Source: Mobula birostris (taxonomy: Eukaryota). Taken from it: DNA of 64,000 nt. Made by a program: the position numbers and the translations under genes. Position 1 is the stretch's first letter; every line of letters starts with the position of its first letter. The notes below the pieces were generated by a model, which saw nothing but the letters and a program-made list of their open reading frames with translations, made no database searches and was not told the origin of the DNA. This document shows positions 43,674 through 46,130 of the stretch, one piece after another. The stretch spans positions 26,467,821-26,531,820 of the forward strand of contig NC_092379.1 of the NCBI RefSeq assembly GCF_030028105.1. The letters run 5' to 3'.

Positions 43674-46130
43674 CTCTCCAGCTACCCAATTTAGTGATGT
43701 CCTCATGACTTCTGAATAACTCCCGACCCCTTCCTGCAGACAAAAAAAGAACATTCCAGTTACAGAACAGTGACATTGCTTCCCAAAGAGTAGATCTAAC
43801 GCCCTTTTTCTCATGTACTACTTAGGCCAACCTCTTTGGGAGTTTCCTAATCCTCCGAGACCTCCGTACCCCCTCACCTACACCCTTCAGACTCGGACAC
43901 TACTGGGAGTACCTTGGGTAGGCTTGCCAAATCCTCTCTCAATCTCTCACTCATGCCTCACACTGCAACTCGGAGCTCCCTGTCCCGTGTCCAGGGCCCC
44001 TCGTCTTTTCCTTCAGGGTCCTGCTATAACCGGGCTGCCCAGAGACACCTCTCCTCACTATCCCTGACTCAGTGGGAGAAGGGGCAAATATCTCTTCACG
44101 ATGTGGGCATGTACCAAATATCCAGCACATCATCCTTCTAATACTTATTCTTCCTCATTTTCTAGATTGGTAGCTGCTGGTTGATTTTCTTTCAACTGAA
44201 GCATTTAGCCTGGGCGGCCTCTGCAGCCACTTCAGCCTCCTGCAAACGAGACGTCAGCTTCTTCTTTCACTCCTCTGCCTCCACCCGCAGACGCAGAAGT
44301 TCGGACTCACGCTTCGTGTTCATCTCCATCTAGGACACAATAACACCACGAGCTCCTTCTAATCTGTTCTGGGTCGATTTCTTGAGTTGGTCATTGTTTC
44401 GTCTCTCTGGTTTAATTCATCAGTAAATGGCCGCAGTTTCGGCTCGGAATTCCGTTTCCCCGCCTCCACTGCGACGAGCGTGGACTCAAATTGTTCAATG
44501 GTTGTCAAAAATTGCAGCACTCAGTCTCCTGCATTTCTGAGCGTTCGGATGAGCGGTGCAAATGTCCTCACTCAGAAGCTGCGTCCTTCTTCAGAAATGA
44601 CACTGGTCCAAAGAAAAGTTTACTTCGTTAATCCCTAGTCGCCCAGGATCCCTTAGTCGCTTCGCTTTATAGTCTTCCAAGGCCAATCCCAATGCTAGGA
44701 TATCATCCAAATACAGCAAAATTCCAAACACCTCCACGCCCCACATGGTCTTCCTCATGCCCCGCGGGAAGGTTGCAGGAGCTCCGGATATGCCCTTTGG
44801 CATACTTTCGGACCGGAAGAATCCTACGGGATCTATAACGGCTATCTTCATGTCGGCCTTCATCTTCACTTGTTGGCCTCACTCATCGGGGTCTGGCAAC
44901 ATCCACTCCTCAAATCCAGCACATTACACCACGTCGCACCGCTGAGACAGACCGTAGCGTCTTCGGTCCTTAGGACCGTATACTGGTCAATAACAGTGCT
45001 CCTGTTCAGAGTCCTAGAATCCACATACACGCTGCATACGATTTCCACGGCAGCAGGGGCCTGTCGCAGTAGCCTCTCTCTCACTGAACTATCTTCAGCG
45101 TCAACTCTTCTCCCTGTGGTATATCGGAGCTTCTACAAAGTGGGTCTCACCCTCAGATACTTCCCCCGTGCTGAAAAGCCACCGGCTCTCGTTTAAATTT
45201 GGTACCGGCCCAGTGCTGCTATGCACGTCCCCACAAGGAGGTCGAAACACTGGGTGCACAGAAAATTCCCCAAACAGCTCTCACCCGCCTCCACCAGGCA
45301 GGCCCCCATGCGCCTCCTCACCAGCAGGGTGTTGGTCCCCTCCAGAAGCCAAACACTACCGTCGCACCAGGGTCTGTTCACATCAGCATTAACGATTCAC
45401 GACCCTCTGACACACATGCATTGGTCTCCAAGAGTTCCAGTTTCACTGACCAATACCCGTATTTTGGATAATCACTGGCACTAGTACCCCAAATCTCTTG
45501 TGCCCACGAACTGTACAACAACTTGATCTGCGCCCCAGTGTCAAGGATGGCTTTAGCATAGCTTCCATCTATCCAGAACGACACCGGTGTGGGTGGTCCC
45601 TCTAAGCCTTCAGGAATAGGGTCTTTTCCTTTCGGAAGTTACTTGCTACATTGCTGGGAACATGTTCCCCCAGAGTCCCCAAGCCGTTCCCCCACTGGGC
45701 CTCTATTAAGTTTCCCAACACCTCTCTGATCAGCTGAACAACTGAGTGAGGGGCTGATCACTTTAAAGGATCCTCCTGGCACAGCAAGCAATGTACCTGC
45801 TCCCCCTACCCTCCAGCCGGAGAGATACACTAAAAACTTTCACCAATCTCCTGACACCGGTATGCAGGTGCTGTATGTTACTTCCAGTCGAATCAAATGC
45901 ATGCTTCCACGCTCTGAGATAGCTGGCAGCTGTCACTACGGGGTAACTGACACTGACAGTTCTAACACCGTCACAAAGCCCGCCTACTCAAACTTTCAAC
46001 CAATCCCTGCCTTTTGCCCGCTGCCACTCATATAACACCACCAAAAATATGTGGATAAATGGGTACCGGGAAAAATAATGCTGGTAATCAACCTCGCGAT
46101 AGACTGGCGTTTCATCCAAGGGAGGAGGTG
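43674..46130 (-). mobile_element. Gypsy internal region copy B (gag end, protease, RT, pol tail), deleted and degenerate
   Basis: Protease AILDTGAQ (ORF 45378-45584). RT LLYLDDIL..SLDQCHF (ORF 44591-44869). Acidic pol tail DDVLDIWYM near 44110-44135. Confidence 0.85.
44171..44365 (-). pseudogene. Sarcomeric myosin heavy chain tail-like fragment (65 codons, 3 stops) inside Gypsy pol
   Basis: RLEGARGVIVS*MEMNTKRESELLRLRVEAEE*KKKLTSRLQEAEVAAEAAQAKCFS*KKINQQL aligns without gaps to two MYH rod segments recalled from memory: [28 protein letters not shown] and [35 protein letters not shown]. Confidence 0.75.

Follow-up and report, generated by a model that had tools for sequence, protein, structure and literature searches.

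The capture of host sequence by a retroelement is an already known kind of event. In acutely transforming retroviruses, an intron-free piece of a host mRNA, the viral oncogene (v-onc), is fused in frame and replaces part of pol or of other viral genes; the joins lie at short homologies, and the resulting virus depends on a helper. Template switching is the textbook account of this pick-up of host oncogenes by retroviruses. In plants, long terminal repeat (LTR) retrotransposons with captured gene fragments have been surveyed in rice, sorghum, and maize, and aberrant template switching between co-packaged RNAs was described as a mechanism of capture (PMC13317346; for maize elements, see PMC2774510). 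The locus analyzed here lies in a stretch of 64,000 nucleotides from Mobula birostris (assembly GCF_030028105.1, contig NC_092379.1, positions 26,467,821 to 26,531,820), referred to as the window, and holds a decayed Ty3/Gypsy-type element whose reverse transcriptase (RT) is followed by sequence resembling the rod of sarcomeric myosin. A literature search found no paper describing such a family of RT–myosin elements in rays.

On the minus strand of the window, the Ty3/Gypsy RT is broken after its KCxF motif (44594-45024) and continues directly into a stretch of approximately 430 bases that resembles the rod of sarcomeric myosin (44165-44590). In the interpretation favored here, to which a probability of roughly 0.85 is assigned, the region 42151-46037 represents a dead, non-autonomous Ty3/Gypsy-derived element of a family of myliobatiform rays (copy A), followed by a second, partial copy (copy B), and the founder of this family carried a gag fragment, a protease, and an RT, followed by an intron-free MYH16-like rod piece in the pol frame that stood where integrase and most or all of RNase H would otherwise lie. 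Such an element would resemble the v-onc viruses in its in-frame piece of host mRNA, in the loss of part of pol, in its short-homology joins, and in its dependence on helpers. Unlike these viruses, it is a germ-line retrotransposon of rays and not infectious, it became a multi-copy genomic family, and its insert is an internally shortened structural coiled coil with no obvious selective effect. It shares with the plant capture elements the non-autonomous LTR-type organization, the internal and amplified host sequence, and the proposed mechanism, but differs from them in its elasmobranch host, in the insert being in frame with the RT, and in the undefined LTRs of copy A. The following features carry this interpretation:

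45807-46037, minus strand: decayed gag fragment (PNMA-type capsid) at the upstream edge of copy A, recognized by homology to 42432-42702 (80-86% identity)
45206-45689, minus strand: remnants of the aspartic protease and of the protease–RT linker, with stops and shifts (tblastn of residues 3-178 of protein P0007, three frames, E = 1e-24)
44594-45024, minus strand: RT palm in two frames (44869-45024 and 44594-44848), aligned to P0007 residues 410-461 at 73% and 463-547 at 45% identity
44545-44600, minus strand: RT/rod join, reading SLDQCHF, stop, RRTQLLSEDICTAH (RT relatives align up to 44594; P0001 from residue 93 onward corresponds to MYH7 from 916 onward, HMMER)
44590-44350, minus strand: rod segment 1, MYH7 ~918-1008
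44345-44365, minus strand: internal join 1, QNRLE/GARG, from MYH7 ~1008 to ~1150
44365-44270, minus strand: rod segment 2, MYH7 ~1150-1181
44267-44284, minus strand: internal join 2 (LEEA join), VEAEE, stop (44267-44269), then KKKL, from MYH7 ~1178-1182 to 1385-1389
44284-44165, minus strand: rod segment 3, MYH7 ~1385-1421

Part of the rod had been noticed in an earlier note on this DNA as a 65-codon frame, which is present on the minus strand (44365-44165) with correct coordinates and frame, reading NRLEGARGVIVS, stop, MEMNTKRESELLRLRVEAEE, stop, KKKLTSRLQEAEVAAEAAQAKCFS, stop, KKINQQLPI, stop. A recount against the two myosin strings quoted there gave the same identities, 13/28 and 21/35, and the two rod segments, about 200 residues apart in myosin, are joined in frame at (D/E)LEE(A/S), as had been described. 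This LEEA join is, however, the second of two internal joins, and the rod consists of three segments rather than two. More rod had been suspected within 44400-44520, and rod-like sequence indeed reaches up to ~44590. Over the entire charged, helix-type stretch down to ~44165, the outer frame reads RRTQLLSEDICTAHPNAQKCR, the shifted frame TTIEQFESTLVAVEAGKRNSEPKLRPFTDELNQRDETMTN, and the outer frame again DQLKKSTQNRLEGARGVIVS, stop, continuing with MEMNTKRESELLRLRVEAEE and the remainder given above.

Stop-free pieces of the window were searched separately, the PDB set comprising 177,635 sequences. The sole significant PDB match (phmmer) of the 24-residue piece at 44195-44266 was Gp7-MYH7(1361-1425), with 17 of 24 residues identical (E = 0.0026), and the 53-residue piece at 44362-44520 was placed on MYH7 953-990, the collinear position, at E = 1.8. 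The public protein model P0001 covers the window in a single alignment (44848-44165, 58% identity over 241 residues, E = 2e-72) and matches MYH7 in three collinear stretches (E = 5e-8). Together with P0155 and P0153, it matched human MYH7/MYH4 with E-values from 5e-8 to 5e-6 in the collinear blocks 916-1005, 974-1110, 1125-1185, and 1351-1421 (MYH7 numbering). Arthropod (insect) striated-muscle myosins scored far weaker, and smooth and non-muscle myosins were not among the matches listed for these three models. At such values, the similarity to myosin lies above the coiled-coil background. The ESM Atlas gave no usable match for the rod part of P0153.

A mere chance likeness, in which a charged, helix-forming sequence resembles any coiled coil, would agree with the lack of a significant myosin match for most stop-free pieces, with the silence of Pfam, and with one piece fitting designed helical repeat proteins better than myosin. 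It can be regarded as excluded for practical purposes, because the better-kept relatives match sarcomeric myosins, and these only, in three to four collinear blocks; moreover, the 24-residue piece found the corresponding fragment of the MYH7 rod, and a myosin-tail model from a ray shares 63-70% identity with the relatives.

The three rod segments are collinear, and each is linked to the next in frame at a short motif common to both; their ranges overlap at the joins, where a few residues are assignable to either side. Segment 1 was placed by alignment to P0001, whose residues 93-180 match MYH7 916-1005. It is distributed over two frames, with shifts near 44527, where copy A is short of four bases (CCAG) compared with other copies, and near 44392, and with outer-frame stops at 44497, 44488, 44422, and 44419. 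A placement of 44400-44560 at MYH7 1100-1160, made by eye, was rejected, as HMMER places this stretch at 918-1008. Segment 2 reads GARGVIVS, stop (44330-44332), MEMNTKRESELLRLRVEAEE; its equivalent in P0001 aligns to MYH7, and the same region of P0153 aligns to MYH4. Segment 3 reads KKKLTSRLQEAEVAAEAAQAKCFS, stop (44192-44194), KKINQQLPI, its P0001 equivalent matching MYH7 at E = 2.5e-9. In a narrower delimitation, segment 2 spans 44344-44270 (MYH7 ~1155-1181) and segment 3 spans 44266-44165 (MYH7 ~1390-1421). The stops listed for copy A are located at 44591-44593, 44330-44332, 44267-44269, 44192-44194, and 44162-44164. As in the sarcomeric myosins compared (MYH7, MYH4, and a MYH16-named ray model), all three rod parts are recognizable; unlike these myosins, copy A has no motor-like sequence, retains only ~150 of ~1,080 rod residues, and shows two internal deletions, with five stops and two frameshifts in its rod part. 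Copy A is myosin-derived, but it is not a myosin gene.

The RT upstream of the rod reads VDSRTLN..LDLRSGCCQ in its first block (44869-45024) and ..APATF..YLDDILAL..SLDQCHF in its second block (44594-44848, YLDD motif at 44702-44713), followed by the stop at 44591-44593. Gypsy pol proteins (n = 59) cover 44510-45111, and a full protein-library search with the RT piece returned 210 RT matches, the long ones carrying RVT_1, RT_RNaseH, and rve domains. The Pfam RVT_1 match of the window piece itself was weak (E = 0.017, 15.3 bits vs. a cut-off of 29.6 bits), and a word search with the 95-residue RT piece gave no match. The aspartic protease lies upstream of the RT in the same reading direction, a Ty3/Gypsy feature; its LDTGA motif is found at 45531-45545, residues 3-134 of P0007 cover the protease (E = 1e-24), and the protease and linker are also matched by P0013 (residues 3-101) and P0094 (488-636). 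The repeated unit that includes the gag fragment starts with TGTTATATGAG at 46037, and the summed contig depth falls sharply past this position. Gag N-termini of P0011 (residues 7-62) and P0028 (21-46) match the lower stretch at 42703-42536, and in the full-length gag of P0094 and P0009 these parts correspond to residues ~186-290.

Intact relatives encode PNMA-type gag, RT, RNase H, and integrase (Pfam), but their matches to the window are confined to 44510-45111 and 45369-45806. Copy A resembles the autonomous Ty3/Gypsy elements with PNMA-type gag (P0007, P0009, P0013, and P0094) in its collinear protease and RT, in the 45-73% identity of the RT blocks, and in a gag matching the capsid domain; some autonomous relatives are named 'Gypsy retrotransposon integrase-like protein 1'. 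In these elements, the RT thumb, RNase H, and integrase follow, whereas the window has the myosin rod instead. The RT thumb is also missing, the RT ending after the SLDKCQF motif. Among 155 proteins, no pol match was obtained below 44510 at E < 0.01, which confirms the reported absence of RNase H and integrase after the RT; intact relatives carry both domains in that position. Copy A is non-autonomous because it lacks RNase H and integrase. For the same reason, the order RT–RNase H–integrase, which separates Gypsy from Copia elements, is unreadable from copy A.

The best matches of the RT piece were short public models that run from YLDD..SLDECQ into the rod (P0001, P0002, P0004, P0005, and P0012). 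P0001 and P0002 share all joins with the window, and P0151, which has no RT part, shares the two internal rod joins. In public annotation, models of the family carry the following names:

Mobula hypostoma: "myosin heavy chain, skeletal muscle-like", "cardiac muscle isoform-like", "striated muscle-like", and "myosin-7B-like"
M. birostris: "uncharacterized protein"
Hypanus sabinus: "putative uncharacterized protein MYH16"
Hemitrygon akajei: "uncharacterized protein"

Furthermore, assembled contigs of four runs from two species were mapped on 41800-46300 at a minimum identity of 80%. Approximately 8,000-9,400 contigs per DNA run fell on this 4.5-kb stretch, including its high-copy flanks of long interspersed nuclear elements (LINEs). 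At individual sites of the element, 5 to 64 distinct contigs carry variant letters, and the summed word depth over the rod was ~20-190 times that of the contigs of the locus itself (a rough measure and not a copy number). The RT/rod join and each of the two internal joins are spanned by contigs that stem from other copies. Family contigs were also found in runs presumed to be RNA, the run type being uncertain. The family has been amplified, its joins being present in many contigs and in the models of four ray species, so that other copies with the same insert, suggested as a check in the earlier note, do exist. The capture itself did not take place at this locus; the same joins recur across the family in other copies and species, and they were inherited from the family founder or from early subfamily deletions.

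These observations also bear on the view that the two parts are unrelated neighbors, namely a truncated Gypsy element beside a myosin pseudogene or processed retrocopy. In favor of such a view, no LTRs enclose both parts, and fragments of LINEs and LTR elements are heaped together in this region. Nevertheless, public models from four species share the identical in-frame RT/rod join, as do many contigs from two species, and the models sit on contigs of widely varying size from several species, unlike segmental duplicates of one locus. As to features of a LINE-made processed pseudogene, no A-rich tail was found after the rod, and the rod is fused in frame to the RT. Independent neighbors are therefore considered very improbable.

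In the related species, contigs of single-copy depth with ~93-95% identity bridge the flank at 46037, the join at 42702, the RT/rod join (44423-44799, 44511-44779, and 44535-44825), and the border to the LINE near 42150. The same insertion is present there, and copy A was therefore already in place when the two species separated. Copy A is an ordinary dead member of the family, old and broken, and without present function.

Comparison of the family members revealed how the joins are distributed. At the RT/rod join, the crossover point is placeable within ~15 codons, with the rod starting at ~44590, at the RT motif SLD(K/Q)C. A short RNase H remnant (P0007 702-746) lies between RT and rod in P0004, P0005, P0153, and P0178; P0001, P0002, and P0180 are without this remnant, and their rod starts earlier. 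Internal join 1 is a subfamily-specific deletion common to P0001, P0002, and P0151 and spanned by a contig of another copy (44194-44388), whereas P0153, P0155, P0179, and P0180 retain MYH7 ~1005-1103. Internal join 2 reads LLRLWRELEES.KKL in every family member covering the region and is bridged by contigs of other copies. Aberrant splicing was considered as an origin of the LEEA join, but was too weak to claim; the start of MYH7 exon 31, which we take to be K1390, lies at the right edge of the join. The longer variants show an additional family-wide loss between two RVEE motifs, where a gene model of Narcine bancroftii reads LQRKIKEYQARVEELEEEL and the family reads FQVRVEEAGG. All joins are in frame and lie at short repeated motifs, and the known variants all keep the rod in the pol frame. 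Copy A belongs to the subfamily with the RT fused straight to rod residue ~918 and rod 1008-1150 also lost. The variants fit one founder followed by lineage-specific losses; two captures or gene-model artefacts may account for them as well.

Candidates for relatives of the donor are two Narcine bancroftii models, P0181 and P0182 ("MYH16 isoform X2" and "myosin-6-like isoform X4"; Pfam Myosin_tail_1, PF01576). The family rod is 63-70% identical to them over rod ~1040-1103, compared with about one third for MYH7 (hand count). No direct match between the Narcine models and the window was obtained, because the shared rod stretch is deleted in copy A. Since both models carry the head–rod junction and rod parts absent from the family, they are not family members. 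The only signature left in the window, ELNQRDETMTN, agrees with Narcine (ELIQRDETIAT; ELxQRDET in common) and not with MYH7 (EEMAGLDEIIA). The donor may have been MYH16-like, as had been surmised in the earlier note; in this comparison of the Narcine models with MYH7 and MYH4, the MYH16-named Narcine model is the closer one. P0181 and P0182 comprise 225-234 residues, skip rod ~880-960, and end abruptly; they look like a decayed or badly modelled MYH16-like gene of the electric ray.

An mRNA origin of the rod piece is likely. In the stop-free piece 44362-44520, GKRNSEPK/LRPFTDEL is read uninterrupted across the position matching the MYH7 exon 23/24 border, which we take to be at K974/V975. The uninterrupted rod in family models amounts to ~185 residues and so exceeds the longest rod exon, presumably 390 bases. 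Likewise, P0181 and P0182 differ by a cassette of 29 residues, presumably one Narcine exon, and the family models read across both of its ends. These findings argue against a chimera formed at the DNA level, either by insertion of a Gypsy element into a myosin gene or cDNA copy or by recombination between the two, with the internal joins as later slippage deletions. The in-frame pol fusion without a spacer also fits a copy-choice event. On the other hand, the 1008/1150 join is later and subfamily-specific and the RNase H piece is found in some members only, which points to stepwise deletion after founding, and joins at microhomologies fit both mechanisms. A DNA-level origin is judged unlikely, although it is the most serious of the competing explanations.

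Under the preferred interpretation, we infer that a myosin mRNA was co-packaged with the element RNA in a virus-like particle and that the RT switched templates at short matches. The defective chimera would then have been copied by proteins of autonomous relatives, and later in-frame losses between coiled-coil motifs (RVEE, LEE(A/S), and LE) would have given rise to the subfamilies. Copy A was inserted before the species split and has gathered its stops and frameshifts since then. For the later in-frame losses, either copy-choice by the RT or DNA slippage is conceivable, and the data fit both. A further proposal holds that the rod cargo, fused to protease and RT, was useful to the defective element. 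It might, for example, have associated with itself and so brought the element RNA or the fusion protein into particles made by autonomous relatives, or it might have interfered with these relatives. If true, this would explain the retention of the rod in the pol frame and the in-frame nature of all internal losses; such a role is nonetheless judged improbable, even more so than an origin at the DNA level.

Several points weigh against the interpretation as a captured myosin mRNA. The 20-, 28-, and 53-residue pieces of the window gave no significant myosin match in the PDB, and Pfam Myosin_tail_1 missed nine window pieces and ten family models. LTRs, a primer-binding site, a polypurine tract, and a target-site duplication were not definable for copy A. 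The losses at short repeats are equally possible by DNA replication slippage or unequal recombination after the capture. Moreover, the family sequences are in part automatic gene models, in which stretches were possibly spliced out, and some deletion variants may be artefacts. Finally, P0181 and P0182 are short and odd models with MYH16 status by name only, and the absence of introns was judged only against presumed MYH7 exon borders.

Downstream of the rod, three further features were distinguished:

43913-44164, minus strand: family-specific tail including DDVLDIWYM (44108-44134), aligning only to chimeric models
42703-43912, minus strand: non-coding 3' part of copy A, multi-copy according to contig depth and counts, with no protein match and no second copy in the window
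42151-42702, minus strand: partial copy B of the front end of the element (gag fragment, protease, and linker), 80-86% identical to 45268-46037

The tail aligns to P0002 (down to 43961), P0155 (down to 43913), P0012, and P0152. DDVLDIWYM, which had been taken for the end of pol, is not a pol tail; no pol protein match was found for this stretch, and conservation of the motif is confined to the chimeric models P0002, P0155, P0178, and P0179. An alternative reading of the motif as myosin FDKILAEW (MYH7 ~1445) was unsupported, the HMMER alignments to MYH7 ending at residue 1421. Within the non-coding part, the most abundant stretch is ~43460-43913, which holds an AATAAA at 43632-43637, and an LTR may lie within 42703-43912. 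For 42703-44100, no second copy was found in the window, and reading of 42650-43960 by eye gave no convincing primer-binding site or polypurine tract. The last ~450 bases of the tail of copy A (42703-43158) are several-fold rarer in contigs than the rest of the element. In both species, a few contigs join 43117 directly to 42149 (anchors of 21-28 letters), which may reflect an insertion or a variable leader.

Copy B follows copy A head to tail. Its protease is without a 274-base core, residues 71-163 of P0007 match 42432-42154 at 49% identity, and its linker reaches P0007 residue 163 before being cut at ~42150 by a LINE fragment. The direct repeat 42172-42702/45268-46037 was rejected as an LTR pair: both parts encode gag, protease, and linker, and the lower one is without the protease core. 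The only direct repeat in the copy A region (42151-42702/45206-46037) is the coding sequence of copy B. Possibly, copies A and B form a tandem array with a shared LTR located somewhere in 43200-43900.

The surroundings are rich in other repeats. CR1/L2-type LINE fragments, with the FADDTK motif and the usual C-terminal tail, flank the element at 41951-42164 (plus strand), 46150-47203 and 47201-47650 (both minus strand), and 47976-48972; their summed contig depth amounts to 20,000-550,000, compared with ~10 for single-copy sequence, in both species. An inverted repeat of ~500 bases with 89% identity (40854-41346/48677-49172) brackets a 7.3-kb block containing the element and LINE fragments, and may represent two opposite copies of one repeat or the ends of a larger unit. 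A second short Gypsy pol match, unrelated to copy A, is located at 32950-33162 (up to 6 of 60 long pol queries), and a run of 155 N at 23291-23445 represents an assembly gap or masked sequence.

Copy A itself adds little beyond the family, being old, broken, and orthologous in a related species. The family as a whole represents a clear animal case in which an LTR-type retroelement took up a piece of host mRNA and then amplified it. To our knowledge, such capture is well documented for retroviral oncogenes and plant elements, but has seldom been documented in vertebrate retrotransposons. The series of losses at short repeats, all of them in frame, provides a natural record of copy-choice or slippage events. 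In public ray annotation, the names "myosin heavy chain ...-like", "myosin-7B-like", or "MYH16" are attached to copies of the family. Myosin gene counts are inflated as a result, and work on the muscle gene families of elasmobranchs can be misled by the wrong names.

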